DNA of 41,238 nucleotides. Source: Octopus bimaculoides. Taxonomy: Eukaryota. The notes below the pieces were generated by a model that searched no databases, was not told where the DNA came from, and saw only the letters and a list, made by a program, of their open reading frames with translations. The position numbers and the translations under genes are program-made. Below are positions 1-29,885 of the stretch, piece by piece. Every line of letters begins with the position of its first letter. Position 1 is the stretch's first letter. The stretch spans positions 71,780,693 to 71,821,930 of the forward strand of contig NC_068988.1 of NCBI RefSeq assembly GCF_001194135.2, in the 5' to 3' direction.

Positions 1-42
1 TGTGTGTGTGTGTGTGTGTGTGTCTGTGTGTGTGTGTGTGTG
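1..42. repeat. (TG)n microsatellite
   Basis: Directly visible; probably the internal TG tract of the SINE interrupted by the transposon at 45. Confidence 0.95.
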
Positions 43-44
43 TA

Positions 45-1267
45 TAAGGTGCGTAAGGCATTTGAGGACATACCTCTTTTGGGTCATTGGTGCATTTTTT
101 GCTAACTCTGTATAATTTTTGTTTCAGAAAATAATAATGGCAGATCCTAACCTTCCTCAAGAAATGAAGAGGCATGCTGTTATTGTGGTTATAGAGACCG
201 AGCATAGCAATTTAGAAATATCCTGATTTTTAAAAGTCTACAAAGTCTGTAATGAGCTAAGGACTGAAGATGGAAACGTATCATCAGTATCAAAGCATAA
301 AAAGCATTCTAAACACTCTGAAATCATCAGAACACCTGAATTTATCCAACAAGTTCAACAGACCATTGATTGCAATTCCAGAAAGTCCATGAGGTCAATT
401 GCAAAAGATCTCCATGTGTCAGAAGGAACAGTCAAAAATGTTGTCCACGAAGACATCAGATATAAGTCTTATACGATGAGAAAAGGTCAATTTGTCAGAA
501 AAAGGAAAAGAAAATCACTACATCAGATCTAAAAGACTCTTAAACAAACTGAAACATCCAGCAGAAGATTTGATTTGTTTTTACTCGGACGAGAAATGTT
601 AATAGAAGAAATGACAGATGGTTATGTGCAGACCCTTCTCAAGTTCCAAGTGTTATGCAGACAAAATTTCCTGCAACTGTCATAGTTTTAGGGGTTGTCA
701 GCAACGAAGGACATGTGATACCTCCTTATTTCTTTCCACAAGGATTTAGAGTAAACTCTGCCGCCTACATTGAGATCCTGAAAATAATTATTAAGCCCTG
801 GATGGATAGTGTATGCAATGGAAAGCCACATATGTTTCAGTAAGACTCTGCACTATCATACATGGCTCTAGTAACACAGGAATGGATGGCTGAAAATTTT
901 GATGATCACATAACCCCTAACATTTGGCCTCCTAATTCTCCAGATCTCGATCCATTGGACTATTACATGTGGAGCGTTGTTGAGAGAGAGGTCAATGAAC
1001 ACAGCCATAACACCAAAGATTCTTTGAAATCTGCCATACTCAGAGTAATGTCCAAAATAAATCTGGACCACTCGATTCGAGCATGTGGATGATTTAGATC
1101 TCGTATAGAAACAGTTGTTGAAGCTGAAGGTGACTTTGTTGAATATTATGATAGAAAAAAGGTTTATCTTTATTCCCACAGCATTTTTTTATTAATAAAG
1201 TTATCTGTTATTAAATATCTGTTATTTTATAAACATAAATCTGTCCTCAAATATCGTACGCACCTTG
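45..1267 (+). mobile_element. Tc1/mariner-superfamily DNA transposon, DD37D (maT-like), full-length but inactivated
   Basis: Imperfect TIRs of about 26 bp (taaggtgcgtaaggcatttgaggaca / RC caaggtgcgtacgatatttgaggaca), TA at 43-44 and 1268-1269. Transposase remnant from ATG 137 with FYSDEK, *DSA and WPPNSPDLDPLD; 37 residues between the 2nd and 3rd catalytic D; stops and frameshifts present. Confidence 0.9.
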
Positions 1268-1269
1268 TA

Positions 1270-1470
1270 TTTGTGTGTCTGTGTTTGTGCAATCACCACC
1301 ACTTGACAGCCTATGTTGGTGTGTTTACGTCCCCGTAACTTAGCGGTTTGGCAAAAGAAACCAATAGGCTTAGTACAAGGCTTACAAAGAATCAGTCTTG
1401 GGAGTCGATTTTTTTTACTAAAGGCGGTGGTGCAACATGACTGAAACAAGTAAAAGAGTAAAAGAATAAA
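1270..1470 (+). mobile_element. 3' part of tRNA-derived SINE (family 1)
   Basis: Matches the ...cttgacaaccga...gtaacttagcgg...aaaaga...gactgaaacaagtaaaaga tail seen in other copies in the window (3520-3555; reverse at 25300-25400 and 30535-30760). Confidence 0.75.
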
Positions 1471-1483
1471 GGAATAAAAGAAC

Positions 1484-1494
1484 ACACATGTATG

Positions 1495-1539
<45 letters not shown>

Positions 1540-1703
1540 ACCTACATACACACACAAACATACATATATGTATATATGTATATGTATATATGTAGGTGTA
1601 TCTGTGTGTGTGCACGCGTATGTGTGTGTGTGTGCACGCGTATGTGTGTGTCTATGTGTGTGTGTGTGTGTGTGTGTTTGTGTGTGTGTGAGTGTGTGTG
1701 TGT

Positions 1704-1742
<39 letters not shown>

Positions 1743-1744
1743 TA
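1484..1744. repeat. compound (TG)n/(TA)n microsatellite
   Basis: Directly visible. Confidence 0.95.
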
Positions 1745-1749
1745 TTCTA

Positions 1750-2273
1750 CGATGGTGAGATGAAACGTTCATAGACTCACTATAAAGAAGTGATTCTAAA
1801 TAACTGTATTGGTTCTTAGTTGATATGATAGATAGCAGTACAACGGGTGTAAATGATACCAACCCTTTCCAGTCCCTATTCTTCAATCCATGAGATATAT
1901 CATATGATATGAGCCTTATTTATCGACAACCCTACCCTTCAACAAAAGAGTTTGCATCCCTCAACAGACAAATGACGAAAAAGAAGCACGCTTCACCATA
2001 GCCGGCACTAAAATTCTCCTGATTTGGCCCCATATGACTATCATCTGTTCCCCCAACACCTGGCTGGGACCCAGTGAGGATGACATCATATCTGATGTTG
2101 ATGACTTTTTTTACCAACACGATGAAAGCTTGTTCACCAATGGGATTAAAGCACTGCAACACCGATGGATGAAGTGTGTGGACCGCAAAGGTGACTATGT
2201 TTAAAAATAAACCTCATTTGGTCACATTCATCACTGTACCTTTTCGGCCTATGAACTTCCTAACCGACCCTCG
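1750..2273 (+). mobile_element. internally deleted mariner (DD34D-type) remnant in intron 1 of peptide gene copy A
   Basis: Degenerate TIRs (cgatggtgagatgaaacgttcatag / RC cgagggtcggttaggaagttcatag) and a C-terminal transposase remnant SPDLAPYDYHLFP...RWMKCVDRKGDY at about 2015-2205. The same remnant lies at the same position upstream of exon 2 in copy B. Confidence 0.75.
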
Positions 2274-2345
2274 AATACTATATTTTTTTTTTTTTTTTAC
2301 TAACAGTTCTTAAAATTAATTATTTTCTTTTTTCATATTTCTTAG

Positions 2346-2460
2346 TGTCCGATCTTCTTGACAAGCTCCGTAACTTAGATTTATCTAACGGCTGTGAAAA
2401 GGTATGCTCAGCAATTACCGGAGGATTTTGGGAGTTTCTCTGTCCTACAGCCTGCGGCTT
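2346..2460 (+). CDS. secreted Cys-rich peptide gene copy A, coding exon 2: SDLLDKLRNLDLSNGCEKVCSAITGGFWEFLCPTACG
   Basis: Polypyrimidine tract + ag acceptor at 2344-2345, gtaagt donor at 2461, 115-nt open exon, CX3C-X11-CX3C. Collinear paralog at 32171-32285 has identical length, phases and cysteines. Confidence 0.88.
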
Positions 2461-3156
2461 GTAAGTAGAATCATTTATAAACGTCATACTCTTCTATTAT
2501 TACTAAATATATACCAACCTAACGAAAAATTGCATATTATTAAGTAGAAGGAATGAATGGAAACCTAATGAATTAAAGTTTACTTCAAAAAATTCCGAAA
2601 TTTCCAACTATCCGGAAATTAGAATTATAGTACAATGTCTGACATTTATTTCTGTTAGAGACTGTTGAAAAAAGTTAATTCGCAACGGCTTAGATGCTAT
2701 AGCATATTTGATATAAATGTGTAGAAGATAGAATGTTTAACAACTTTATTATTTGATAACACGCAAATACGAAAGCACAACGTGAAGATGGCAGAAGAGG
2801 AAATAATAGTATACTGAGAGAAAGGGATCACTATTCCTATTTTCGATGGGGTTTGTGATCTCCCGTTTCGGCTTTTGTTGTAATATTCTACCTCTGAGTA
2901 TAGGTAAATACTAATGGTGCCTTTTCAAATTTATTCTTTTATCTCTTCGTCAATATAACTGATGGTAATGGTTGTTGAATATAATTATTTAACTTCAATT
3001 TGGAAATGCTTCTCAGAAAGAATATTAAATGAATATCTGTTGAATAAAATGTTTTCAACGCAAAGATAGCTTTAAATTATTTCGATATTATTTCATTAAT
3101 TATATTTAATTCATTTAAAATTGGTTTTATTATTACATTTTCTTTTATCATTGCAG

Positions 3157-3172
3157 GCTTGTTGGTAATTAA
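3157..3172 (+). CDS. peptide gene copy A, terminal coding exon (L)LVGN-stop
   Basis: ttttcttttatcattgcag acceptor; completes the split codon TT|G; TAA at 3170-3172; paralog has (I)VLGD-stop at the equivalent position. Confidence 0.82.
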
Positions 3173-3203
3173 TGCAGTATGTAAACATATCCTATGTATC
3201 GAA

Positions 3204-3209
3204 AATAAA
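3204..3209 (+). terminator. candidate polyadenylation signal AATAAA for copy A
   Basis: Canonical hexamer about 30 nt after the stop codon, followed by T-rich sequence. Confidence 0.5.
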
Positions 3210-3300
3210 CGATGAGGAGTTATTCGTTTTAATTGTTTTGTTTTCTAATGTCAGCATTATTATTTGTATGTGACCATTATAAATATTTTCACTAACCACT

Positions 3301-3459
3301 TCGTAGGCGTGACTGTGTAGTAAGAAGCTTGCATCGCAACCATATGGTTCCGAGTTCAATCTCATTGCGTGTCACCTTGAACAAGTGTCTTTTACTGTAG
3401 CCTCGGGCCGACCAAAGCTTTGTGAGTGGATTTTGTAGAGAGAAACATGAAGAAGCCCG

Positions 3460-3493
<34 letters not shown>

Positions 3494-3555
3494 ATATGTC
3501 TCTGTGCGTGTGTTTGTCCCTCTACCATCGCTTGACAACCGACGCTGGTGTGTCC
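3301..3555 (+). mobile_element. tRNA-derived SINE (family 1), 3'-truncated by the following insertion
   Basis: Degenerate Pol III A/B boxes, core ...aagtgtcttttactgtagcctcgggccgaccaaagc...gaagaagcccgtcg, internal (TG)n; multiple copies in the window. Confidence 0.8.
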
Positions 3556-3565
3556 CCCCCCCCAG

Positions 3566-4942
3566 CGTTTACCAAATCTTATTTGATATATATTATAATT
3601 AAAATTAGATTGTTCATATTACTAAACTTATTGTTATATTAATCTTTGCATGAGTGTAGCCATACTAGGTCTACCACAGTATTTCACTTCTATTCATACA
3701 CAATAAGCCTAAGAGTAATAATATCTCATGGGAAGTCATCTTCCCCAGTGCCCAAATACGAACTTATACAATATAGAGAGGGGATCAGTTAATATTAAGT
3801 TATTACATTTATGTTCTACAGTGGGGTTGTGTTGTTCCTAAGTAGGTAGGACTAATAGGGTCCATTATAAGTGGAGGTAGACCAGTATGCTGGTTGAAAA
3901 ATTAAATCCAGATTGAAACTAGCACAAACAAGCTTACCCATGGTATAAAAAGTACATAAAAATAAAATTAGCTGCCAGGGAGTTTTAGCATTGGGGTTAG
4001 CCATCATGCCCTCTGTATTCCAAATTAGGTTCATGATTGAAAGAGCTGGCGTTTGTTACAGGGGATGAGTAGTTTATATTAAGGAGGAATGGCTTAATAA
4101 GTATATAATGTAGTTGGTTGTTTTGGGTTGGAGTCGAAGTTAAACTCGGATATGCTGGTGAAGGGATAGAGGTACTGTTATTGGAACACCTGTAAGGGAC
4201 TCAGGTATGTAATACTATTAAACTAGCTTTAATTTAGGAGTTTATATATGCCTTCATTTAATATCAAGGGCTACTATTTCTGTGGTTAGGGCATCTTGGT
4301 GCTATTTTGGGGGATGGTGCAAGGGTTTCTAATGTTATTTATATTTAGCGAAAGTAAACTTCCACTTGTGCAGGCAGGCTGTGTTTCTCTTTAGCCTCAA
4401 GTTCAGTAGTGGGTGTTGTGCCACTAGCATGAAAAAAATTTAATTGATGCAAAGATAACATTTCCTGTTTTTCACATTGTACGAAGGTGCGAAGGCGAGG
4501 ATTTTCCATTCAAACGCGAAACTAGTATACTTATCTTTGAGTTCCCAAATATATTTACTTAATCCGGTCGAATTAATCCTATTTCTATTTCTGAAAGAGA
4601 GTTGGTGTGCGGCTAGTCTACGTTTCATTTCATTTTTGGTAACTCCGATGTATATCTTTTTACTAAACTGTGTTGTGACTGTGCACTGGTAAATTACATC
4701 TTTACTTTTACAGGAATTTCCGAGGGCACAGTTATCCTTATCCCTACAGTCGCATAGATTGTGCTGTGAAGAGAATTACTTTCTGGGGGGATAGTGCTAG
4801 GTCTATTAAGATTAATAGGGTTAATATGGTTCCGAGAGTTCCCTTTACTAAAATCGGGATGGTTATGGAGTTTATTGCTTTCATTCTTACTATTACTGCT
4901 GTCGTTGTTATTGTTGCTTCTATTTAAATAGAAAGTGTCTAG

Positions 4943-5014
<72 letters not shown>

Positions 5015-5670
5015 GGAAATTATGCTGGCTGAGTTGTGCTATGCGTGAGACTATAACCTATCTTTATTGCTCTACTATTAATAAGTTTCGAATACATGCT
5101 ATTCTTATCAAAGCGTTTATTTATAATGTTAAATATTAGCTTAGCTAAATATGCCTTTATTTGCATCGCATATGGGAGTATGAGCCAGTTAATATCTCTT
5201 GATTTACCGGTAATCTTGCCGAACGGCACATGTTTATAGCTGTTAGAGTATTGCGTGTGAGGTATATGCTTATTATAATTAGTTTTATCTAGGCTATGCG
5301 CATTAATACCGCCATTAGTGGTGCTAGTTCTTGGTTTTCGCGGGTAATATTTTGAGTTGTTACCGTGGTTTTCGTGATTAGTGGGTTTATTGGCATCATG
5401 CATCCCTCGTCTAGTTCCCCTCGCTATTCCACTTCTTGTATTTCTGATATTACTATAGTTCTCCTTAGTGTTGTTAATTCCGATCCTGTTAGTGTCGTGA
5501 GCTATAGTTTTCTGTGCTTTATTTCTTAGTTTCGGTGTAATATTGTGGTAGATTCAGTATGGCTACACCCACGCAAGGGTTAATGTAACAATAAGTTTAG
5601 TAATATGAACAATCTAATTTTAATCATAATATAATGTATATTAAGTAAGATTTAGTAAACTGTGGTAGGA
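3566..5670 (-). mobile_element. Penelope-like retroelement derivative (linker + GIY-YIG, no visible RT) bounded by inverted repeats
   Basis: Minus-strand CDCRDKDNCALGNSCKSKDVIYQCTVTTQFSKKIYIGVTKNEMKRRLAAHQLSFRNRNRINSTGLSKYIWELK...CYLC (about 4345-4770); linker WLILPY...KIGYS (5020-5403); inverted repeat of about 110 bp at 3575-3690 / 5540-5660. Confidence 0.75.
4944..5008. repeat. (TAT)n microsatellite
   Basis: Directly visible. Confidence 0.95.
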
Positions 5671-5813
5671 CCCGGAGTTTGTAATCATGTTTGTACTTAG
5701 CAAGTGATTTAACTTATATTCGTTGAACTGTTTGGGTTTTTTGTACTTTTGGCCAGAATGCAGCCAGGAACGTGTAGACATTTACTCGTTCGTCTAGTAT
5801 TACCACTACTTCG

Positions 5814-6692
5814 GGATCTTTTTTAAAACGGGGGCCACATTTTTCATTAACGAAACACTTTGAAACTTGGAACACTGGTAGAATGTGTCATATAAAGCAT
5901 CTTTTTCTCTTAGTCTTCTTTAAAAAAAAAGAAATCCATAAGTTATTCCATGTTAAAGTTGTCGTATTTCTGTAATTTCAACCAATCACTGACGTCCATT
6001 CAGCCGATATACATTAAGTGCCGACTACATAAACAAACGATTCTGAAACAATTAACCCTAACCCTAACCCTAACCCTAACCCTAACCGTAGGGTTAGGGT
6101 TAGGGTTAAAGCAAATTTAAAATGAAAAAAGCAAATAAAACGAAGGTATGGAGATTAAATACGCTTTACATCGCTTAATCAGCCAAAGGAGTAAATATAA
6201 ACAACTGAATACTTGTCAGTGATTGGTTGAAATTAACGAAATAAGACANNNNNNNNNNATTTCTGTAATTTCAACCAATCACTGACGTCCATTCAGCCGA
6301 TATACATTAAGTGCCGACTACATAAACAAACGATTCTGAAACAATTAACCCTAACCCTAACCCTAACCCTAACCCTAACCGTAGGGTTAGGGTTAGGGTT
6401 AAAGCAAATTTAAAATGAAAAAAGCAAATAAAACGAAGGTATGGAGATTAAATACGCTTTACATCGCTTAATCAGCCAAAGGAGTAAATATAAACAACTG
6501 AATACTTGTCAGTGATTGGTTGAAATTAACGAAATAAGACAATTTTTTACATGAAATAAATTCGAATACAAAAATATTTTTCTGTTCTATAACACAAAAT
6601 AGATAAGTATACGAAGTTTGAAAGTCTTTCCGTACCAAAAACACTACGTAAAACATTAATGAAAAATGTGGCCCCCGTTTTAAAATAGATCC
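5814..6692. mobile_element. non-autonomous TIR element (MITE) with internal telomere-type repeats
   Basis: TIRs of about 37 bp (ggatcttttttaaaacgggggccacatttttcattaa vs RC ggatctattttaaaacgggggccacatttttcattaa); 8-bp target duplication CTACTTCG at 5806-5813 and 6693-6700; internal inverted subrepeat aatttcaaccaatcactgac; (TAACCC)5...(GGGTTA)3. About 290 bp is duplicated across a 10-N gap. Confidence 0.85.
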
Positions 6693-7727
6693 CTACTTCG
6701 AAGTATGCTGCCTGTTTAAGCTGTCAGATTTAGCAGTGTATTTCAAAGGTAATTTCTTCTATTATTCACCTCCCCTATCAGTAGTCTCGCCTTAACTGTA
6801 AAAAAAAGTTTATAGACCTATTGGTTGCTAGTATTTATCTTATTTTTATTTTTATTTTGTTATGTTGAGATGGTGTAGAAGGGCATAAGCGACCTCGTGC
6901 TACTTATGACAGCGTCTTCTCCCTAACACCTTTTATTTACTGGTTCATTTTCTTCTTTATTTACGTCTTCACTTGTAACGGTCTAAACTTGCTCTTCATT
7001 TAAATATAACTGACTAATTGTAGAGATGGCTGGACTTTGGTCAGTTCCATTACGGATGACAAGTGGTTGGTCTCTAGAATATCTCAGTAAAAACTTTACG
7101 GGTTTGGTTTGGTTTGGGGTAAATATAATTAGCTCTATTTACGAAATCATAAGTACAATTCTTTTTCTAGACATATTGGCGATTCCTGTTTTACTTTAGC
7201 ACTAGTTTTATTTTACTACTATTTATAGACCTTGGTACCCCTATATAAAGAGATAACCCATAAATCATTTCCCTAGTTCGTTTGTTAGTTCACTCTTTTG
7301 CCTATTGACATAAAGATTCACATTGCAAAATGGTATGATTTTAATATATTGAGCCTTCTGGTTTCTTCTCGAGGTCCTGTTCTGTCCTATTCACTCTCCC
7401 CTCTTCCCTTCGTTTATTTTATTTTACCAATTTGTATTCACTCTGATGAAGCTCCACGTACTAGATGGAATGTGGTATAAAGATGGCGNNNNNNNNNNNN
7501 NNNNNNNNNNNNNNNNNNNNNNNNNNNNNNNNNNNNNNNNNNNNNNNNNNNNNNNNNNNNNNNNNNNNNNNNNNNNNNNNNNNATTATTAAAGCTGCAAA
7601 AACATCACCAGAATATTACCAAAATACCACAAAAATCACAAAAATCTACCTCTGGTATTCGAGTACTAATTTTTCTCACATTGTTTCACATTTATGTACT
7701 TACTCTGATATATAAATAATTTAAAAG

Positions 7728-7783
<56 letters not shown>

Positions 7784-7905
7784 TCGATATGTGCATTTAT
7801 ATGTATATATATGTATATGTATATATATATATGTGTATATATGTATGTGTGTATATATGCATGCGTGTATGTACATGTATATATATATATACATACATAT
7901 GCATA
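7728..7905. repeat. (GATA)n plus (TA/TG)n compound microsatellite
   Basis: Directly visible. Confidence 0.95.
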
Positions 7906-7962
7906 CATGATAGATCGCTGACCACAACATTCAAATTTTTTTCTCCGTGTTTTTCTCCTTAT

Positions 7963-8000
7963 TCTTTCTGTTGAAGAGCGTAGCTCGAAACGTTAAAGAC
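7963..8000 (+). ncRNA. minimal type I hammerhead ribozyme-like motif (variant core CUGUUGA)
   Basis: TCTTT-CTGTTGA-A-GAGC-GTA-GCTC-GAAA-C-GTT-AAAGA: 5-bp stem I, 4-bp stem II, palindromic minimal stem III (AACGTT). A6 is changed to U in the core. Confidence 0.5.
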
Positions 8001-8251
8001 TTTCTCTATTCTCAAGCGTTAAACTAATACATCCTTTTGTTGTTTACACCACCTGTACTCGTCTGTTTTTTTTTCGTAAATTCTCCCATATATATATTTT
8101 AAGCCATAATACATGGGGTCATGTAACTCGTAGTGCTCATAAAAAAAGTTTCTTAATGTACCACCCTACAAAACATGTAGCATATAAAATGCGAAACGAG
8201 AAAACCATAAAGAATGTATAAAGTTATAAATGACAGAGAAATTCTTTGATA

Positions 8252-8282
<31 letters not shown>

Positions 8283-8861
8283 AGAAATAATTTTAGAATC
8301 AGGTATACACATTGTAGTGTACTGTTTAAAGCTCTTTCACAATATCCGGTTACTTGATGTCAACATCCTTATGGGTGTATATGCCACTGGATTTACTTCA
8401 AGAATTGCTTTATTTTATGAGAAAAAAATGGAAATTTATGAGTCTTTTTTTTTCGGAACCATTACGATCGTTTCAACCCATCATGCGCCGGTACCTTGCT
8501 GGCGAGATGTTGTACAAACAGTTGTGATACATCTTATGCCTGGAAGCGTCTCCCCTGATGACTTATCTAAAAGTACTTCGTCTTCTATTTGCGCTTCTCT
8601 TATTTGTGTAACAATATATTTTGATAAGTGTAGCGTACTGTACGTCCTCATAAAGAACTGAGATATAATTAAAAAAATTCTTCTCAATAAAATAAAGTAT
8701 ATGTGTATAAAGAAAATAAGGAATCAAATATACATTGTATCAAAGAAAATGTGACACTCATTTAAAACAAAATATTCATCGATCAGAATAGAACAAAAAT
8801 AGCATCGGACATTTATACTGACGTTTACATTTTCTCAAAACAAATATTGTAGCGTATTCTC

Positions 8862-8872
8862 GTATGTGTATG

Positions 8873-8906
<34 letters not shown>

Positions 8907-9000
8907 TGTACGTATGCATGCATGCATGCATGCATGTATGTACGTATGTATGTATGTATGTATGTATGTATAAGATGTGTGTGTGTGCTCGTGTGTGTGT
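8862..9000. repeat. (TATG)n/(TG)n microsatellite
   Basis: Directly visible. Confidence 0.95.
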
Positions 9001-9019
9001 ATACTAAAGTAATAAAAGC

Positions 9020-10535
9020 GATGGCTGGTCCTAGAGTGACCAATGGTTTCGCATCCACGAAGCAGTAGCCTTGCGGACGATTCATCAGACTCTAATCCGG
9101 TGACAAATTTAACTCTTCACCTCAGGGAGGCAGAAATATGTTACAGTCATTGGCCATTTGGTCATCGAAGGATAAATAGTCCCGCGTCAGTGAGGACGGC
9201 TTATCTCCCTTAGATCAGCTATTTGTAGGCTGGGAGACGGGGAACAAGGGATTCGCTGCTTTTGGTTCGTAAGTACCCTTCCGGGCTTAGTCAGAGAACG
9301 GGGTATCACATGCTTGTGGTAGGTAGCGCTGGAAATGGGTGCATGATGTGAAAATTCCTTGGCGAGTTTTCACTGATCCAGGTTTCAGGGAGTCTTTGAA
9401 TATCGCTCGGTTTTGCAACGCTGGGTCCTGGCCACTCTAAGATCTTCTACTTGTTATCGTATGGGATCCCTTCATCTTTGAGGTGCTACATTTTGCTGGC
9501 CAGGAATGTGATTAATCGTCTTTCCCGGATCCTGAAAGAGAACTTGTGATTGTACAGGCATCGCTTGATGACCGTCCCGGATGACCCGATATATTTCCAG
9601 GTTTGGGTATTGGTTGCGTTCACATTACTGGTGCATCTTCGGTTGGCTCCAGGCTTAGTGATGTTGTTGTTGGCATCGGTGTTGTTGGGGTTGCCGTCAG
9701 TGCTGTTATCATTACGATGCGTGGGTCCGGCGATGACGCTGTGGCTGTTATCACTGTGGTTGTCGTCCCTCGCCGTACCGTTGGCGCTGTTGTCTCCGGT
9801 GGTGATGTGGGTACCGTCGGCGATGTGGGTGCCGTCATTGGTAATGTTGGGTGAGGGGCCAATAACCTCACTGGTGCTACTGGTGTCGGCATGGTCATCT
9901 TCTCCGGCCATAGCACTGGTAGAAGGGTTGTTGACGTCAGTGCTGGTTTTTCTGCCGCTGTCACTGCCTCCGATGCCGTCGATGTTGTTGGATGATCCAT
10001 TGCTGCTATTACTGTGGTCAATAGGCCTGGGTATCACCACAGACTCATAGTGACTCCCTCGGCCTCGCATTGGCCTCCCCTGGACAGTCATTCTACACCC
10101 TACAAAAGCAGCCTGCCTCTTCCCGTGTGTTATGGGTGTTAGCTAATATACTTTTCATGTTGGGTGCATAAGTAAAGAAGACCCTTAGGTTGTGCCTGTT
10201 GAATAAACGTCCGTATCTGTGACTGTGAGAAGTTTTTGTCAATTAACCTGAAGAATATCCTTCCCACACTGGTCTTGATGTTGAGTGAGAAGGCTGAGGC
10301 AAGCTAAACTACGTTTCATCGGCGCCTCCTTTTATGGGTGCTAGAGCCTGGCATGTAGGAGATGCGGTCCTTAACCCCGCTGTACGCCTCGTTGTAGTAG
10401 GGGTGGCGGCGTCAAAGATGTCTTGACTAGAAGATAGATTCGAGATCCTCATGATGATAGCCTTCACTAGGTTCTTGAATATGATAGGGGGTGGCAGGAG
10501 GCTGTGTTGATATAAGACAGTCGCCATGCCAGAAA
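9020..10535 (-). mobile_element. 5'-truncated Penelope-like element (RT thumb, linker, GIY-YIG with large insertion)
   Basis: Minus strand: PPPIIFKNLVKAIIMRISNLSSSQDIFDAATP (thumb), FSLNIKTSVGRIFFRLIDKNF and FNRHNLRVFFTYAPNMKSIL (linker), CFCRV*NDCP, then HYESVV...WKYIGSSGTVIKRCLYNHKFSF; hammerhead motif at the 3' end. Confidence 0.85.
9032..9094 (-). ncRNA. type I hammerhead ribozyme motif
   Basis: RC reads TAGAGT-CTGATGA-at-CGTCCGC...GTGGATG-c-GAAA-CCA-T-TG-GTC-ACTCTA: perfect 6-bp stem I, 7-bp stem II with G-U pairs, self-complementary stem III, GUC cleavage triplet. Confidence 0.75.
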
Positions 10536-11179
10536 AGACAAAACGTATACCTATACATTGTATCACAAAATAAGGATCAAGTTAAAAGAAATACAATAAG
10601 TTGATAAAATAAGCATCTTCAAAATTTATTGATGACTCACTTAATTTAGTCAACTGCGTAGCATTTTCTTTGTAAACTCTAATATTTTCCTAGACAATCT
10701 AATTTGCGAAAAGCAAAAGTTAACTGCTTACGAAAGGAAAGTCCATGACGCAGTACACCAAGTTGTCCAAGGGAGTGAACTCTATAAATAATTATCTCCC
10801 TCGAGTCTGATTAATTACATTTATTTCTGATAAAATATTTTAAGCGATAATATTGCAGTACAAAGTTCTGTTAACTATTCTCTATGCTCGTAAGAAAGAA
10901 AAGCTGTATGAAGACAAAGAAAGATGGCTTCAAATGCAATGTCAGTGAAATCCTAAGGAAGTTCTAAATGAATTCTCTTTCATTAAAAATACTGTTTCTC
11001 AAAATTTGCAAAACATGATTGCAAAAATAGCAAACGGAGCAACTTAGTTATTCGTACTAATATGGTTTCAAAACAAAACACATATATTACATATAATATA
11101 ATATAATAGAATAGAATATATAATAACATGAAATATAATAATCAGGCTTTCAGTAATAGGCACATGCACGCAAACATAC

Positions 11180-11427
11180 CTAATTGGTTAAGAAGTACGC
11201 TTCGCAACCAAATGGTTTCGGGTTCAAGTTACACAGCACAACATCTTCCTGCAGCGTAAGGGAGATAACCGTTATTTAAGAACTTGTTTTCATTATAAAG
11301 GCACATCGAGGACTTTTAAAGATAATTACCCTAATAACAAGGTATGTCCAAGGTATGCGCCCATCCCGCCCGATTAATGCATTCAGAGTTCATTTGGTAA
11401 ACGGAAACTGTACGAAAGTCTGTTGTA

Positions 11428-11450
<23 letters not shown>
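11180..11450 (+). mobile_element. 5' half of SINE (family 1) shared with the copy B unit, split by nested PLE insertions; 3' half at about 20020-20390
   Basis: Collinear with the uninterrupted SINE at about 36430-36780; breakpoint in its (CTAT)n tract. Confidence 0.7.
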
Positions 11451-11477
<27 letters not shown>

Positions 11478-11491
11478 GATAAAATATAATC

Positions 11492-11520
<29 letters not shown>

Positions 11521-11522
<2 letters not shown>

Positions 11523-12800
11523 GGAGTTAAAAGATAATGGTATTAATTTTAGCCGTAAATGGGAAATTATAAGAAAAGCTCAACCTTATAGAAATAATAG
11601 ATATGGATGTGAATTGTGTTCTATGGAAATATATGAAATTTTTAAACTTAGAAATAATCCTAATCTAATCAATAATAGATTAGACCTTAGGGTATCATGT
11701 GTACACTGCTCTACTCGCACTTTTAAATTTTTTAAAAAATAGGTCTTTATAAAGTAGCTAAAGTTATCAAATTATAGTACTTTACTTCTACCATGGTCAA
11801 CTAGGACTATCAATTAGCACATAATTTTAAATTGGTAATTGAACCTTTATGACATATATTCCTGATCTCTCACCTTAACATTTAATCTACTTAAATCAAT
11901 CATCAGGTTCCTGTATTGAATATCCTTGTTATTTCCTAGCATCTTTTCTTTTTTCAGTCCCTTAAACCTTAGTAAGCACATTATTATAAACTAATATAAA
12001 TCCGATAATAATTTTTATTCACATTATAAAAATAAAGCTTACCTATGTGTCTCCTAAATAGTATCATTATTTTATTTTCAGCTAAAATTTTTTTAAGATA
12101 ATTCAAAATAGTTCTCATGAACCCAATATACTTAATATCCTTAAACTTTACACCCTATTTATAGCCCCTGAATTCAATAATGACATTATTTCATGATTTT
12201 TGTATAAAATAATTACATCTCTTTTTATCTATTTTATTAACATACCTCTTATTGTGAAAATATTGGTTAAACTAATATTGTTATCTGTATAACTATACTG
12301 ATACTCTATTTAGACTAAAAGAAAAAAAACTATTTGACCCATATACCTAAGGTTTTAATTCCTCAACGTTTTGATAGTAGTAAAATGACCTGGTACTACT
12401 CTGACCAGGGATACATTTATAATCTAATACATTTATAGCCTTGTCCATGCATACTGCTTACACCTTCCCTTTCCTTAGAAGTAATTGTCCCTTATGCTAT
12501 CACCACTAGATAAGAGACAAACAAAATCAGAGACAGAACTTTTGTCTAGAATCAATTACTAGCCTGATAGACTCGGCTATGTCAAGACGGATTCATGTAT
12601 TCTTCCTCCCACTTGGATGTTTATGTATTCTTTCTCCCACTTGGATTTGAAATGCTGCCACAATTATAATATGTCTATTCTACTGTAATTTTCTGCATTT
12701 TCGTGCAGCTGAAGATTGCTGTTCATATTGCATTTAATGTAATGCTCGCATTACTTAAATAAATGGAGTAGCATGAAACGTGCGTACTGCAATCATCTTT
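11521..12800 (+). mobile_element. 5'-truncated Penelope-like element (C-terminal GIY-YIG remnant + long 3' region)
   Basis: RELKDNGINFSRKWEIIRKAQPYRNNRYGCELCSMEIYEIFKLRNNPNLINNRLDLRVSCVH from 11521 to about 11740; hammerhead motif at 12704-12791. Confidence 0.7.
12704..12791 (+). ncRNA. type I hammerhead ribozyme motif
   Basis: TGCAG-CTGAAGA-t-TGCTG...TAGCA-t-GAAA-CG-TG-C-GTA-CTGCA: 5-bp stem I, stem II, stem III with 2-nt loop, GUA triplet. Confidence 0.7.
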
Positions 12801-13787
12801 GAAATCNNNNNNNNNNNNNNNNNNNNNNNNNNNNNNNNNNNNNNNNNNNNNNNNNNNNNNNNNNNNNNNNNNNNNNNNNNNNNNNNNNNNNNNNNNNNNN
12901 NNNNNNNNNNNNNNNNNNNNNNNNNNNNNNNNNNNNNNNNNNNNNNNNNNNNNNNNNNNNNNNNNNNNNNNNNNNNNNNNNNNNNNNNNNNNNNNNNNNN
13001 NNNNNNNNNNNNNNNNNNNNNNNNNNNNNNNNNNNNNNNNNNNNNNNNNNNNNNNNNNNNNNNNNNNNNNNNNNNNNNNNNNNNNNNNNNNNNNNNNNNN
13101 NNNNNNNNNNNNNNNNNNNNNNNNNNNNNNNNNNNNNNNNNNNNNNNNNNNNNNNNNNNNNNNNNNNNNNNNNNNNNNNNNNNNNNNNNNNNNNNNNNNN
13201 NNNNNNNNNNNNNNNNNNNNNNNNNNNNNNNNNNNNNNNNNNNNNNNNNNNNNNNNNNNNNNNNNNNNNNNNNNNNNNNNNNNNNNNNNNNNNNNNNNNN
13301 NNNNNNNNNNNNNNNNNNNNNNNNNNNNNNNNNNNNNNNNNNNNNNNNNNNNNNNNNNNNNNNNNNNNNNNNNNNNNNNNNNNNNNNNNNNNNNNNNNNN
13401 NNNNNNNNNNNNNNNNNNNNNNNNNNNNNNNNNNNNNNNNNNNNNNNNNNNNNNNNNNNNNNNNNNNNNNNNNNNNNNNNNNNNNNNNNNNNNNNNNNNN
13501 NNNNNNNNNNNNNNNNNNNNNNNNNNNNNNNNNNNNNNNNNNNNNNNNNNNNNNNNNNNNNNNNNNNNNNNNNNNNNNNNNNNNNNNNNNNNNNNNNNNN
13601 NNNNNNNNNNNNNNNNNNNNNNNNNNNNNNNNNNNNNNNNNNNNNNNNNNNNNNNNNNNNNNNNNNNNNNNNNNNNNNNNNNNNNNNNNNNNNNNNNNNN
13701 NNNNNNNNNNNNNNNNNNNNNNNNNNNNNNNNNNNNNNNNNNNNNNNNNNNNNNNNNNNNNNNNNNNNNNNNNNNNNNNNNNNNNNN

Positions 13788-13836
<49 letters not shown>

Positions 13837-13873
13837 ATGGAGTTAAGCGCAGGTGTTATTCAAATTATTTTAC

Positions 13874-13957
13874 TTCCGACATGTTTCGAAGACGACATTG
13901 GTATTAATCCAGAAGAAATAAAATGGTGTAAAACAATGCAAGCTTCTCATCAGGTAA
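13874..13957 (-). ncRNA. type I hammerhead ribozyme motif in the 3' pLTR
   Basis: RC: CTGATGA-GAAG...CTTC-GAAA-C-AT-GTC-GGAAG. Core intact, stem I degenerate. Same family as the motif at 40621-40704. Confidence 0.6.
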
Positions 13958-14299
13958 TGAAAGAAACCAAACACATCAGTAAGACATTTTAACAGAATGT
14001 GATGTCTGCATATATAATGAAGGGAACGCTATCAAGTTGTTTTTATTAAAAAAAAAACTGTTAGTATATATAACGTCAAAGGTAGTTTATAGAAAGAGAA
14101 GGAGGAGAAAGAAAGAAATTAACTGAAAATTAATAGTGGAGAGATATAGAGCGATAGGTGAATTAGAATAAATCTTAAAGAAATGGAAGTAGATATATTT
14201 AGTGGAAGTGCAATGTAAGAAGATAGTCAAAGGTAGAATTATATAGAATGGAAGAAATCACTTATAGGAACAAAGGGTATGTTTCTGCCATGTTTGCAA

Positions 14300-16530
14300 C
14301 GATAAACGCGTTCTATAAAAGTGAGCTATTACAAAGGGAGCTAAAAGACTTACTGTTGTCATAAGGTAAAGAAATAGTGAGAATATTATGATCTTTTAGA
14401 TACCAGATTAATTTACTAAGCCCCGTATTGTTACGTTTATTGATATGCCTAACTGTAGAGTAATGATTAGATATTCTTTTGGACAGCTGAGATGAAGAAC
14501 TACCTATATAAAAAAAAGACGTCGGAACCCGAAGTAATTTTACATTGATAAATAGAATTTCTAGTCTTCGAATTGCTGCTAAGAAAACGAATACGATTGG
14601 AATTGACTTCAGAAACAGTGACCCCGCTGTTAATATTATTTAAAGAATGGTTAGTGTTAACAAAATTAATGTTAGTATTTTCATTTAGTAGATTTGTATT
14701 TAACAACTTATAATTATGCGAAGAGATGATTTATGAAAGTTTTTTTATGTTAGAAAAACCTATCCTAATTCGGTGTGAGTTAATAATCGAATAGTATCTT
14801 GAATTTCTTGGGAAATTCTTTTCTATAGCTTCACAAAACTGGTAATGGAGGTTAGATTCGATATCTGCTAACCATATGGAATTATTAACCAAACAGTTTT
14901 GCTTGGACATACCTTGTTATTAGGGTAATTATCTTTAAAAGTCCTCGATGTACCTTTATAATAAAAAAGGGTCTTAAATAACGGTTATCTCCCTTACGCT
15001 GCAGGAATACATTACTCGATTTGGTGTTGTTATTCGAAATAAAATTAAAATTGTTAATATCGTTACAACTTGATTTCATGTCCTGATTAATAGAGGTAGA
15101 ATTAATGTCTATACGGTTAATATAGGTAATTTTATATAATCTTTATAGCCTGTAAGGCAGAGTTATAAAATACAGCTTTATCATTGAACATTAGCAGATA
15201 AACTAGAAAGTCTAAGTGAAATATTCCTAACTAAATTCTTTGTAATAGCCTTAGAGTGATTACTGAAAGAGCTAATATATTTTAAATTAGTTGAGGATTT
15301 ATGGTATGGGAAATACGAAGCATTATGCAAGTTAAGGGTAATATCCAAAAAGTTGGCTTTAGTTACATCATCGTCAAAAACAATGCTTAAGCTCATGTTT
15401 CGGAAAAATTTAACTAAGCTATTCTTAGTCCTTTGTAATTTTTGGTTAGAAGCATTTTGAAGGTAGAGTAGGCAATCATCACGATATAGACCTCCACTGA
15501 TGTTTGGGAATTGGTCAGCCATCTCATAAAGGATACATATATACCGACCAATTAAGCGATTTGCGCTGATTCAGAACTTCCCATCGTGACATCAAAACTG
15601 TCGGATGTATCTTTACGGACCTACAGCTTGTTATCAAATTTAATAATAGATTTTCTGGCGGCCAACACGATATTAATTTCATCCCTGGTGAGACCTGCTT
15701 TGTTGTGAGCGAGCCAGAGTGCATTGTTAAGTACGATTGGGTTGATAGAAGAAAAGAAACTAGAAATGTCAAATTGGATAAACTTAGTGCACTTCTTGTT
15801 ATTAGAAGAACTAAACCAATCGACCACTTGGAACGAATTAAATCATAAATTAAGCTTTAATTTTTTAACTAAGGTAGGAATATATTTATCTAGAATATTT
15901 TTGCTAAGTACACCGATGTCAGAGATAGAAGGACAAATAAGTCGTAAGGATGGGTTATTAAAAAAATTTTGTTTGTGATATTTCAAGATAAAACGAGGTT
16001 GCTTAGGATCAAGGGGTTCTGTCTTCATCTGTAAGTCATATTTCTCCATAATTTTCTTAGCCTCAAGATTGGCTTTACTGATTGCATTTTTACCGGGAAT
16101 CCTATAATTCTTCTGCATTTCTTTTCTAAGCAATTTTAGGTAATAGTCCTTGGTAAGCCCGTACAAGTTTCCTATTTTATCCTATTGAACCAGTGTCCCA
16201 TCCATGCTCTGAATTTCTTTGGTGATATTGTGATGATACCTCAGATGTTTATTCCTTAAGGCTAAACGGTGGAATTTCACATTCCTCACGATAGACCAGA
16301 GATCGTCTTCAAACTGTTTCAATCTTGGGTTAGGTGGAGGACTGTTTTTAGATTTAAACAATTTTTTGAATATAGAAGCTGGATCGTTAGAGGGCTATTT
16401 AATATCTTTATTGTCGAAGAAAAACGCAAGCCATCTAATACGGTTAATAAAGGAGTTTGTCTTACTAATGAGTTGTTTAAGGAAAACTTTCTTGGGGGAA
16501 TGGGTATATCCTTAAGAGATGCGTTTATAT
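14300..16530 (-). pseudogene. PLE reverse transcriptase + GIY-YIG endonuclease pseudogene
   Basis: Fragments 15843-16166, 15621-15827 and 15181-15522 of the ORF track join across in-frame stops; YRDD catalytic motif. Confidence 0.9.
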
Positions 16531-17417
16531 CAAACAGCTCCGTATGCAGAAACTATTTTATTAGCTGGTTATATGGACACCTGGTTGAAGTGTGTATAAA
16601 TGTTTGTGTGTTTTTACAGTGTTTACAATTAACACGGAATAAAATGAATAAACAGTTACCAGAGTAGCAAATATTCACGCAAGTAACAAGGATGTAACAG
16701 CCTATTTATAAAATTAGAAACTCCAGGTTTAGGTGAAATATTTTGTATAATATTGATAAATAAATGGAGTTAAACGCAGGTTTTATTCGAATTCTATTAC
16801 TTCCGACATATGTTTCGAAGACAACATTGGTATTATTTCAGAAGGAATAAAATGATATAAAACGATGCAACCAAACATCAATAAGACATTTTAATACAAT
16901 GTGATGACGGCGAATATGATGAAGGGAACGCTATAAATTTTGTTTTAAAAAACCGTTTTATACATATATATATATATANNNNNNNNNNNNNNNNNNNNNN
17001 NNNNNNNNNNNNNNNNNNNNNNNNNNNNNNNNNNNNNNNNNNNNNNNNNNNNNNNNNNNNNNNNNNNNNNNNNNNNNNNNNNNNNNNNNNNNNNNNNNNN
17101 NNNNNNNNNNNNNNNNNNNNNNNNNNNNNNNNNNNNNNNNNNNNNNNNNNNNNNNNNNNNNNNNNNNNNNNNNNNNNNNNNNNNNNNNNNNNNNNNNNNN
17201 NNNNNNNNNNNNNNNNNNNNNNNNNNNNNNNNNNNNNNNNNNNNNNNNNNNNNNNNNNNNNNNNNNNNNNNNNNNNNNNNNNNNNNNNNNNNNNNNNNNN
17301 NNNNNNNNNNNNNNNNNNNNNNNNNNNNNNNNNNNNNNNNNNNNNNNNNNNNNNNNNNNNNNNNNNNNNNNNNNNNNNNNNNNNNNNNNNNNNNTATGGT
17401 ATTCTTCGATGTTGTTG

Positions 17418-17484
<67 letters not shown>

Positions 17485-17485
17485 A

Positions 17486-17573
17486 TGCCCGTGGGCATTT
17501 GGCGTAGTGGTTAAGGCTGCGGGCTACTAACCCCAAGATTCCGAGTTCGATTCCAAGCAGTGACCTGAACAAC

Positions 17574-17632
<59 letters not shown>

Positions 17633-17815
17633 CAACAAAAACAACAACAACAACAACAACAACAACATCGAAGAATACCTTAGGAATGTGAACCCAGGTT
17701 CGAAATTTCCCCAAGACACCTGAAGAAGGTTGGAGGGTATATCAGCCGAAACGTTGTATTAACAACAAACAAGATGAAGACAAATATCCATCGTATGTAA
17801 ATAATGTAAATAATG
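17486..17815 (+). mobile_element. tRNA-headed SINE with (AAT/AAC)n core and hammerhead-bearing tail
   Basis: A box TGGCGTAGTGG (17500-17510), B box GAGTTCGATTCC (17543-17554), microsatellite, hammerhead motif at 17715-17760, 3' tandem tgtaaataa repeats. Confidence 0.75.
17715..17760 (+). ncRNA. minimal type I hammerhead ribozyme motif
   Basis: GACAC-CTGAAGA-A-GGTTG...CAGCC-GAAA-C-GTT-GTATT; palindromic AACGTT stem III; one mismatch in stem I. Confidence 0.6.
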
Positions 17816-17829
17816 AAGTAAATGGTATA

Positions 17830-20000
17830 AAATGACTACGCACGTTTCGTGGCTATATTTTCAAATAGATAACTACTAAAGCCAATTCAATTAATAATTC
17901 TATTAATAATCAAATCGATCTACTGTTAAATCTATTCAAAACTATAGTCACTCGTCAGGTCTAAAATAAAGTAAAAATAATGATAAAAAATCAATGTACT
18001 TATTGTAACTTATACCAAATATCTGAATATCTAAAAAGAATACCTGTTTTAAAAATAAATAAATAATCGAAAAACATTTAACAATATTTCTTATAGTAAA
18101 AACACAACTTATCTTATCGAAGAATTGCTGTAAACTAAAATTTTAAACGTAAATTTTAAACGTAATACTTAGAACTTAGCGTTTATACGAAATATATCGC
18201 GTGAAAATATGGCGTAAATAAAAAATTATGGAATAATGAGATAGAAATGTATTTAAACCGTTGAGATGACTTATTGTATTTTTGATGTGAGAATAAGGAA
18301 AAAACTAACTGTAGTATATCATTTGCTTAAAATAGTAAAGTCTAAATAACCTAAATCTAAAATACCTAAAATACATTATATATTATATACAAAATGAAGC
18401 TAAATTACAATAATACAATCTATTTACATTAATTAATTAATTAATTTATTTATTTATTTTATAAACATCTTAGTTTAATGTTATTCTAAATATGTAATAT
18501 ATCCTTTATAATTTCGTGCTAATTTATACACATTCTACTACTACAAATCATAACTAGAACAATTAGTAACATAAACTAGGATTCATATAAATGCACAACT
18601 CAACTAAACTTATTATATAAATAATTTAACTTATGACTGCATTTAATTTTTCGTTCATCTAGGGAATTAAACAATTTTTTATTATTAGTTAATAATATCT
18701 TAAATTCATTAGTACATAATAGACAAGAAGCACTACTTATTCAATAAGATTTAGTTTTACAAACTATCTCCCAATTTAAATTGTACATAATATTTTTAGA
18801 TTTTAGTTCCATATATATTTACTAAGGCCAGTAGAATTAATGAAATTTCTATTCTTAAAAGAATTCATATGTTGAGCCACACGTAATTTAATTTTGTTAG
18901 AAGTCGACCCTATGTAAATAGTATTTAAATCAATGCCATTCATACTATTATCATCAAGCAAAGTCACTACACATTTATATACTACATCATCCAAGTTACA
19001 GTTATTATTAAATTTACATTTATTTTTATCTCTACATGTACAATTAATTATGTTCTGGTCTGTATTATTATTATTGGAATAATTACTTGATTTGCTTTTG
19101 TAAAACTTATTCAGCTTAAATTTATTAAAAGAAGAAATAATATTATCAGCATTATCAGTAGTAGAGTAACCAACTCCAAAATTATCACTAGAAAATATGT
19201 TATTATATTTTTTATTATCTCTAATGAATACCTCAATTATATTTAAAATCTCTTTAATAATTTTTGTTTTAACTTGAGCTCCATAAGGAATAATTAGCCA
19301 AGTTTTGTTCATATTATTTATATTATTACATTTATTTTTCATATTATAAAATTTATTATTATCAATAAAAGAATAAAATCTAATCTTATTTTTTAGTCTA
19401 CTATTATTATATTTATGTTTTGTATTATCATAATCCCTATTACTAATTCTATAATTACCTAAATAAAACTTATCATAGTTATTTATGTTAGGTTTATTAT
19501 TATAAAAAATCATAGGAATCATTGAAAATATAATCTTTTATAGTATAATTATATTTAGAATTATTAAAGAATTTAATATTATTATTATATCCCACCTCCC
19601 CCCAGGGCGTCATTATAATAGGGTGCGTGTTTTTGGAAAATATCAAAATTAGAAGAAAGCAGCGATATTCTTTTACCTATATTATCTGTCAACGATTTCT
19701 TAATCGGGGGTGGATGATTACTATTAGCATTAATATATCTAATGTTTTCATTAATTTTGTAGAATAGTTGGGTCTTACCTGTTATTAAATTCAAATTAGC
19801 ATCTAAGTAATTAACATTATAGTTCTCATTATATATATTTATGCTTAATCCATATCTTTTTTAAAAACTATATAGTTTCTTATATAATTCTAATGTTCTA
19901 TTGGTGCAATCGTTAGTTGTTAATAAAAGGTCATCCCTATATAAACCACCCTCCAACTTTAATTTTTCTAATTGAAGTTCTGATAATAAATAAATTCCCA
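17830..20000 (-). mobile_element. 5'-truncated AT-rich Penelope-like element (thumb, linker, GIY-YIG)
   Basis: YINANSNHPPPIKKSL...RISLLSS (19585-19794); WLIIPY, CTCRDKNKCKFNNNC, VVYKCVVT...IYIGSTS...RVAQHMNSF...STGLSKYIW (18803-19522); CLLC...KCSHK downstream; hammerhead at the 3' end. Confidence 0.85.
17834..17961 (-). ncRNA. type I hammerhead ribozyme motif
   Basis: RC: GAC-CTGACGA-GTGACTATA...TATAGCCAC-GAAA-CG-TG-C-GTA-GTC. Stem II pairs at 8 of 9 positions, stem I is 3 bp, GUA triplet. Confidence 0.75.
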
Positions 20001-20031
20001 CTATCTGTCTATCAATCTGTCCGCCTGTCTA

Positions 20032-20082
<51 letters not shown>

Positions 20083-21660: not shown

Positions 21661-21875
<215 letters not shown>

Positions 21876-26430: not shown

Positions 26431-26872
26431 TACACAAAGATACACTCACATATACACTCAATGAGCTTCTTTCAGTTTTTGTCTACCAAATCCTGTCACA
26501 TCGCTTTGATCATTCCGATGGTATAGCAGAAGATACTTGCCAAATGTATCACGCAGTGGGACCGAACTCGAAATCATGTCCTTGGAAAGCAAGCTTCTTA
26601 CCACTAAAGAAGTGAGCCAACAGGATAGCTCCTACATAGTTGCTCAGCAAATTAAAAGTAGCTACTTTGTCGCACTAAACCGTTATAAAAATAAAGGTAG
26701 GACATATTGAATACGTAGACTTTCTAATACTCAAAACCATCCCACGTTAGAATTATCACACACAAGACTTCTTGCACTTCATGATGATCACCGGCCACGA
26801 TCATCTTGATAATAATACAAACAATAACATATCTTAATATATATGTAGTAAGTAAGGCGTAGAGTTGACAGG

Positions 26873-27062
26873 ATCAAGAATCGTTAGCACGCGGGGCAAA
26901 ATGTTTAGTAGTATTTCGTTCGTGTCTACGTTCAGAGTTCAAATTCCGCTGCGGTCGTTTTGCTTTTTATCATTTCTGGGTCGATAAAATATGTACCAGT
27001 TAAACACTGGGATCAGTGTAATCCACTAATATCTTCCCTTGAAATTGCTGCCAAAATTTGAG
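26873..27062 (+). mobile_element. tRNA-derived SINE (family 2)
   Basis: aatcgttagcacgc...gagttcaaattccgc...ggtcgataaaat...gtaccag; second copy at 29050-29290. Confidence 0.7.

Positions 27063-29689: not shown

Positions 29690-29885
<196 letters not shown>

Follow-up and report, generated by a model that had tools for sequence, protein, structure and literature searches.

A tandemly duplicated octopod gene for a putative secreted twin-CX3C peptide, and the transcription of its annotated copy

We analysed a stretch of 41,238 nucleotides of the Octopus bimaculoides genome (contig NC_068988.1, positions 71,780,693 to 71,821,930 of the forward strand; hereafter the window), which carries two copies of a small peptide gene, here called copy A and copy B. 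Copy A is transcribed and spliced, its exons can be placed to the nucleotide, and it belongs to a family of octopod peptides; on these points our confidence is high. Taken as a whole, the part of copy A in the window is probably the 3' two-thirds of a functional three-exon gene. Copy A is already modelled in the databases, and our result for it is mostly tidy annotation. What is new is the unannotated sister gene, copy B, the size and structure of the duplication, and an undescribed and apparently octopod-restricted family of peptides with a twin-CX3C motif.

Structure and transcription of copy A

Twenty-four public sequencing runs are listed for the region, and contigs from four RNA runs were aligned to it. 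Each of the four yielded one contig, of 329-338 nt, that agrees with 2346-2460 plus 3157-3222 without a single mismatch. The interval 2461-3156 (GT..AG) is spliced out in the contigs of all four runs, and a poly(A) tail follows position 3222, 13 nt beyond AATAAA. Additionally, five RNA runs contained ~14% of the words sampled from 2200-3400, which is about the exonic share of that interval.

Exon 2 is bounded by TTCTTAG on its 5' side and GTAAGT on its 3' side, and TTGCAG precedes exon 3. Exons 2 and 3 translate to (L)SDLLDKLRNLDLSNGCEKVCSAITGGFWEFLCPTACG(L)LVGN*, where both leucines in brackets are split codons and the phase is set by copy B. Exon 2 encodes the bulk of the mature peptide, with LDLSNGC and the four cysteines. 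The first-pass annotation, made from the letters of the window, had described these two exons as matching those of copy B in length, phase, splice dinucleotides, four cysteines, LDLS and WEFLC, with an intact open reading frame, and we find the same.

Each RNA contig extends 124-131 nt 5' of position 2346, ending in ...GATGTCGATAAGAGATTTTCTT, and an exact-string search for the extension ...ATGACGAGGATGTCGATAAGAGATTTTCTT finds it nowhere in the window. At relaxed stringency the contigs align to copy B at 28695-28798 with 97 of 104 bases identical (seven differences), depart from B exon 1 exactly at its donor site, and then run into A exon 2. Thus, a signal-peptide exon specific to copy A lies outside the window and is joined by cis-splicing. 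We found no A exon 1 within window positions 1-2345 by exact-string search, tblastn or the family hidden Markov model (HMM) on a six-frame translation; across the window, these searches return B exon 1 and the two exon 2 copies and nothing else. The earlier statements that exon 1 of copy A is missing from the window and lies upstream of position 1 both stand: the exon is present in the spliced RNA contigs, and its upstream location is supported by those contigs, by the junction in the database protein A0A0L8IA49 and by synteny with O. vulgaris. The O. vulgaris gene has a 4582-nt intron 1, and collinearity with it predicts that A exon 1 lies ~2.2 kb upstream of the first position of the window.

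As read from the mRNA contigs and A0A0L8IA49, exon 1 of copy A encodes a 5' untranslated region (UTR), a signal peptide, the acidic propeptide YDEDVDKR with its dibasic site, and the first two mature residues, and is joined to position 2346. The database protein is UniProt A0A0L8IA49_OCTBM (Octopus bimaculoides, 80 aa), named only 'uncharacterized protein'. It consists of MKQETIMKVVCIFLLVLLPLAMATVSLYDEDVDKRFS followed by LSDLLDK...LLVGN, and contains the translation of A exons 2-3 exactly, with exon 2 as residues 38-75. Its exon 1 part differs from that of copy B by Y5C, V6I, A18T and Q21L, and adding two silent changes and one in the UTR to these four residue changes gives all seven differences seen in the RNA.

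Two details of the 5' end deserve separate mention. The A mRNA and A0A0L8IA49 hold an in-frame ATG 18 nt upstream of the start conserved in the family (MKQETI-MKVV...). The RNA contigs begin just ~7 nt before this upstream ATG, and because they barely precede it, translation probably begins at the ATG conserved in the family. In two of the four contigs the 5' end is different and resembles a short interspersed element (GAGCAAATCGACCCCAGGACTTATTCTTT); it may stem from an alternative first exon or from a chimeric assembly.

These data bear directly on whether copy A is a truncated pseudogene, that is, a partial duplicate that lacks a signal exon and is not expressed. The 2345 bp that precede A exon 2 are free of exon 1, and homology between A and B in the window extends only 332 bp beyond the 5' edge of exon 2, to a point within a transposon remnant, as a truncated copy might show. 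However, the 4.6-kb intron 1 of the O. vulgaris orthologue puts exon 1 beyond the window, and all four RNA runs contain transcripts that are spliced and polyadenylated and include a signal-peptide exon. The open reading frame and splice sites are intact, the full-length gene model A0A0L8IA49 matches, and amino-acid change exceeds rather than equals the intron rate while the cysteines are kept. The first-pass annotation had tied the pseudogene to a lack of both an upstream signal exon and transcripts; both were found for copy A. We therefore regard a pseudogene as extremely improbable, and as ruled out in its truncated form by the RNA contigs that carry exon 1 and by the database gene model.

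Tandem duplication and copy B

Read from their alignment, copies A and B are two units of a tandem segmental duplication of ~30 kb. The units are arranged head to tail with a period of ~29.8 kb and share five collinear blocks (Table 1), the first of which is 82% identical over 1325 columns, a similarity beyond chance. For comparison we used the locus of the closest O. vulgaris protein, CAI9726847, on chromosome OX597821.1 (L001). Window 572-20426 is collinear with L001 12758-25458 at 85-91% identity, and window 26712-36842 is collinear with L001 4370-25460 at 78-83%. Upstream of exon 1 the duplicated unit includes at least ~2 kb, equivalent to ~5.6 kb in the coordinates of O. vulgaris, and on the A side it reaches ~18 kb beyond exon 3.

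Within intron 1 of copy A, homology to intron 1 of copy B is confined to 2014-2345, and position 2014 sits within an old mariner-like remnant. The rest of that intron in the window consists of a Tc1/mariner remnant and (TG)n. The start of homology at 2014 reflects later insertions and deletions in intron 1 and is not an edge of the duplication. As the mariner remnant in intron 1 is common to copy A, copy B and O. vulgaris, it is older than the duplication.

Noncoding distances are 0.080 between copy A and O. vulgaris, 0.112 between A and B, and 0.132 between B and O. vulgaris. Because the first of these is the smallest, we assign copy A, on sequence distance, as the orthologue of CAI9726847. 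Either the duplication is slightly older than the split between O. bimaculoides and O. vulgaris, or copy B has evolved faster. The description of copy A as the 'second' paralog reverses the labels, as A is the annotated and transcribed copy and the O. vulgaris orthologue, and B is the more diverged.

The B unit had been said to end at about 38520, and this is accurate: homology ends at 38521, adjoining a 10-N gap. The accompanying suggestion of an array with further copies finds no support in any of the places searched. Downstream of the B unit, the remaining 2.7 kb of the window (one third N) show no likeness to the region preceding B exon 1, and the family HMM on a six-frame translation finds no third copy in the window. 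Additionally, the 10 kb flanking the O. vulgaris orthologue on each side contain no second copy, and the protein searches (exhaustive HMMER and family profile) yield no close paralogue beyond the two copies.

Copy B encodes a precursor of 74 aa that is missing from the protein databases, and the gene is unannotated. No contig matching B exon 1 was seen in the four RNA runs, where contigs show presence and not absence; this is a hint that B is weakly or not expressed in those runs. Copy B does not have the AATAAA of copy A: the homologous site at ~33017 reads AATGAG, and the next AATAAA, at 33119-33124, lies ~100 nt further on. The lost poly(A) signal, together with the lack of B contigs, raises the question of whether copy B is expressed.

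The peptide family: conservation, rates and possible function

Judged by profile searches, copies A and B belong to a family restricted to octopods, which comprises at least 13 database proteins as well as the unannotated B and forms at least one more tandem cluster, in O. vulgaris. An exhaustive HMMER search of 1.84 billion representative proteins with a profile of A and B exon 2 gave six matches (E 2e-14 to 8.5e-05), a family profile search gave 13 proteins (E 3e-33 to 8.5e-16), and the family HMM run on the window recovers A exon 2 at E 1e-19. All matches come from Octopus or Argonauta, and all are labelled uncharacterised or hypothetical. The O. bimaculoides members are A0A0L8IA49, FGZ6, GWF1, GVS8, GWF6, GV61, GV66 and LOC106874479; CAI9726847 and three more come from O. 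vulgaris, and two from Argonauta hians. The other members are 36-62% identical and lie on other chromosomes. Three of them lie within ~87 kb on O. vulgaris OX597831.1, two of these 34 kb apart and on the same strand.

We found no description of the family in the literature searched by peptide motifs, accessions and keywords. Pfam gave no family at E <= 10 except a sub-threshold EF-hand match, and a likeness to an EGF module (best PDB sequence match, LDL receptor, E 1.7) was dismissed as chance. A word-indexed protein search with spliced B (74 aa) had found nothing, which proved to be a false negative of the index. That search missed a 66%-identical protein found by exhaustive HMMER, and its negatives for short peptides are not trustworthy.

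Family members are alike in gene layout and in a small set of residues. Copy A, copy B and the five database members that could be modelled, from two species, all consist of three exons; exon 2 is 115 nt long and begins in phase 1, and exon 3 is short. In all 15 aligned sequences L, G and three of the four cysteines are invariant; the rest of LDLSxGC, the F before the third cysteine and the final AC are invariant or nearly so. The cysteines fall at mature positions 19, 23, 35 and 39 (C-x3-C-x11-C-x3-C) in each of the ten members analysed, where the mature peptide has 45-52 residues and a net charge of -2 to -5; in copy A the motif reads C-EKV-C-x11-C-PTA-C. The database members and copy B begin with MK, a hydrophobic core and an A-x-A-type cleavage site, as read from hydropathy for B exon 1, and continue with a short acidic propeptide that ends in KR (KK in one member).

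One database model in the O. vulgaris cluster may need correction. CAI9736015 (OX597831.1:42,002,655-42,056,700; L005) is a 115-aa model that spans 34 kb. A signal exon of the family type lies at L005 40960-41053, and because it sits just 843 nt before exon 2, the upstream exons of the model look spurious.

Against this background of conservation, the mature peptide changes rapidly. Copies A and B are 91.5% identical in intron 2 and 86% in the shared part of intron 1, as against 93% in exon 1, 73% in exon 2 and 75% in exon 3, such that divergence in the mature-peptide exons runs at three to four times the intron rate. When nonsynonymous sites of the mature region are compared with intron 2 between A and B, the Fisher p is 6e-07. 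The ratio of nonsynonymous to synonymous divergence (dN/dS) is 1.7-2.1 for A against B, 6.5 for A against O. vulgaris, 2.3 for B against O. vulgaris, and 2.3 for an O. vulgaris paralogue pair (V9-V10). Exon 2 of copy A and its O. vulgaris orthologue differ by 13.3 nonsynonymous and 0.7 synonymous changes (dN 0.169, dS 0.026), with an intron distance of 0.058 and p = 0.005 for nonsynonymous change against introns. Exon 1 behaves in the opposite way, with dN of 0.087 below dS of 0.169 between B and O. vulgaris. A pooled nonsynonymous-versus-synonymous test over three comparisons gives p = 0.04. Neutral decay cannot outrun introns, and the cysteine framework, LDLS and the open reading frame are kept. 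Thus, the rates point to diversifying selection on the mature peptide, with a conserved signal and propeptide exon, as the simplest reading.

Processing and fold can be sketched for copy A in a form that we favour with some reserve. The precursor would enter the endoplasmic reticulum, where its signal peptide would be cleaved after AMA. A furin- or prohormone-convertase-type cleavage after KR would then release a 45-residue anionic peptide of ~4.8 kDa, FSLSDLLDKLRNLDLSNGCEKVCSAITGGFWEFLCPTACGLLVGN. The two CX3C motifs would lie on antiparallel helices linked by two disulfides, which would lower that mass by 4 Da, preceded by an extra amphipathic helix at the N terminus. AlphaFold2 models contain helices over SDLLDKL, CEKVCSAIT and FWEFLCPTACGLLVG, with a loop over NLDLSNG and one CX3C on each of the last two helices; the predicted local distance difference test (pLDDT) of the mature part is 70-79, the predicted template modelling score (pTM) is 0.38-0.39, and the KR region is disordered. 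With moderate confidence, these models predict a disulfide-stapled helical hairpin. A Foldseek search of both models against the PDB found no structural neighbour, probably because the peptides are too short and the models only moderate.

The predicted hairpin invites comparison with known peptides. Cystine-stabilised alpha-helical hairpins share the motif XnC1X3C2XnC3X3C4Xn and a helix-loop-helix fold, and include plant alpha-hairpinins, the scorpion toxins kappa-hefutoxin and OmTx, and the cone-snail framework XIV peptides flf14a-c and vil14a (PMC7191063). The octopod family resembles this class in its cysteine motif and predicted secretion and, in models of moderate confidence, in a helix-loop-helix (PMC7191063). 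However, the octopod peptides have 45-52 aa as against the 22-27 aa quoted for animal hairpin toxins, and differ from the class in their extra N-terminal helix, LDLSxGC and anionic character. Disulfides in the class are C1-C4 and C2-C3, whereas the octopod cross-links are predicted only. No sequence or profile similarity and no Foldseek match connects the family to the class. Thus, the likeness is one of analogy and not of membership, and at best convergent. In their conserved signal and propeptide, fixed cysteine framework, accelerated mature peptide and tandem duplication, the octopod genes also resemble mollusc families of secreted cysteine-rich peptides, namely the conotoxin superfamilies and Mytilus MgCRP-I (PMC4558851). 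The cysteine frameworks differ, MgCRP-I having six cysteines, and there is no homology to the octopod family.

A third comparison concerns peptide pheromones. Water-borne pheromones of the attractin type in Aplysia are mollusc-specific, secreted, helical, stapled by disulfides and fast-evolving. Attractins differ from the octopod family in having six cysteines and another conserved motif, and no similarity search result ties the two together.

What the peptide does can be addressed at several levels of probability. Our leading, though tentative, reading is that the family encodes an extracellular ligand or effector under diversifying selection, directed at a rapidly changing or foreign target as in saliva or venom, defence or mate recognition. 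The mature exons outpace the introns while the signal and propeptide exon, the cysteines and LDLSxGC are fixed, and from this we infer an effector rather than a conserved neuropeptide. It is possible, on somewhat thinner odds, that the family is an octopod-specific class of secreted hairpins whose CX3C...CX3C motif evolved independently of alpha-hairpinins, kappa-toxins and framework XIV, and that it forms a positively selected external effector. Of comparable and equally tentative standing is the suggestion that such an effector is a salivary or venom component, a signal between individuals, or a defence molecule.

A precursor of a neuropeptide or peptide hormone, processed at KR in neurosecretory cells and acting on a conserved endogenous receptor, is the closest competitor, and we hold it to be rather unlikely. 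The order of signal peptide, acidic spacer, dibasic KR and single peptide is the classic layout of such precursors. Some members carry a C-terminal glycine, a possible amidation signal, the non-cysteine motif LDLSxGC is invariant or nearly so, and one study has the mRNA in all of its RNA samples. Strong purifying selection is the rule for neuropeptides. The mature peptide here, in contrast, outpaces introns, with dN above dS even between orthologues, and the family has many tandem paralogues, is restricted to octopods and has no relatives among the 1.84 billion representative proteins. Host-defence peptides of the alpha-hairpinin type, acting on microbial membranes or targets, are a weaker candidate still, one that we consider improbable. 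The cysteine motif and predicted helix-loop-helix are as in plant alpha-hairpinins (PMC7191063), and a conserved pre-pro region with a hypervariable mature region is as reported for mollusc cysteine-rich peptide families such as MgCRP-I (PMC4558851). Yet a net charge of -2 to -5 in the ten members analysed is unlike that of typical cationic antimicrobial peptides, and Pfam and PDB sequence searches show no homology to any such family.

A further possibility is that the 'signal peptide' has been misread and that the twin CX3C marks a protein of the mitochondrial intermembrane space resembling small Tim proteins. The spacing CX3C-X11-CX3C is within the range quoted for small Tim proteins. However, members carry a classic hydrophobic signal, an A-x-A-type site and an acidic propeptide ending in KR (KK once); they match no Pfam family, Tim10 included, and are octopod-restricted and fast-evolving. 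On the signal peptide, the KR-ended propeptide and the absent Tim10/DDP match, this explanation is effectively rejected and has next to no probability.

Several points weigh against our overall explanation of copy A and its family. For any single pair, dN/dS > 1 is non-significant (nonsynonymous versus synonymous p = 0.17-0.18) and the test is under-powered; the strong statistics depend on introns as a neutral yardstick, and the three pooled comparisons all include the O. vulgaris sequence and hence are non-independent. The fold model is of moderate confidence and its Foldseek search of the PDB gave no neighbour, the pairing of the disulfides and the cleavage at KR are predictions, and the genomic position of A exon 1 is projected from synteny and not read directly. 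The RNA runs are coded and not labelled by tissue, and an anionic mature peptide is unusual for membrane-active antimicrobial peptides. Additionally, copy B is unseen in four runs and has lost its poly(A) signal, and an odd history of B could inflate the A-B exon divergence. Relaxed constraint by itself, however, cannot lift exon divergence past the intron rate.

Octopod-specific secreted peptides whose introns are more conserved than their coding exons are good candidates for lineage-specific roles, for instance in saliva or venom, chemical communication or defence, and they are cheap to synthesise and test. The twin-CX3C hairpin would also be another independent invention of a scaffold used for channel blockers and antimicrobial peptides.

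Feature coordinates and neighbouring sequences

The eukaryotic DNA of the window is rich in A and T and contains (TG)n microsatellites, remnants of mariner/Tc1 elements and nine N runs. The exons of both copies, the duplication units and the collinear blocks are listed in Table 1.

Table 1. Positions of copy A, copy B and the duplicated segments in the window
Feature	Position	Strand	Basis or remark
Copy A intron 1, 3' part	1..2345	+	from window 572 on, collinear with intron 1 in O. vulgaris
Copy A exon 2, 115 nt, entered in phase 1	2346..2460	+	RNA contigs agree at every base
Copy A intron 2, 696 nt, GT..AG	2461..3156	+	joint 2460->3157 in 4/4 RNA runs
Copy A exon 3 coding part, 16 nt including TAA, ...LVGN	3157..3172	+	splice sites, RNA contigs, database protein
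Copy A 3'UTR	3173..3222	+	AATAAA 3204-3209; poly(A) site 3222, 4/4 RNA runs
Copy B exon 1 (ATG, signal peptide, acidic propeptide, KR, FS)	28705..28798	+	homologue of A exon 1
Copy B exon 2, 115 nt	32171..32285	+	sequence, family HMM
Copy B exon 3 coding part, ...VLGD, TAA	32967..32982	+	sequence
Duplication unit A, in-window part	2014..21793	+	five blocks collinear with unit B
Duplication unit B (upstream region, three exons, ~5.5 kb downstream)	26712..38521	+	collinear with O. vulgaris
Collinear block 1	A 2014-3302 / B 31846-33115	+	A-B alignment
Collinear block 2	A 8252-8553 / B 34533-34815	+	A-B alignment
Collinear block 3	A 10552-11247 / B 35814-36502	+	A-B alignment
Collinear block 4	A 20227-20798 / B 36631-37229	+	A-B alignment
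Collinear block 5	A 20847-21793 / B 37560-38521	+	A-B alignment

Decayed transposase remnants of the mariner/Tc1 type occur at ~100-1200 (+), 25627-26370 (+), 38563-39196 (-), 2014-2215 and ~31450-32065. The intervals 5966-6248 and 6259-6541 are a 283-bp repeat with 100% identity that flanks the 10-N gap at 6249-6258; the repeat almost certainly arose in scaffolding or gap closing and is not a real duplication. Additionally, an element of ~100 bp at 27759-27858, ~0.9 kb upstream of B exon 1, resembles a piece of A intron 2 at 2845-2939 (78%) and L001 15131-15225 (73%), and could have arisen as an old internal repeat or from a small mobile element.

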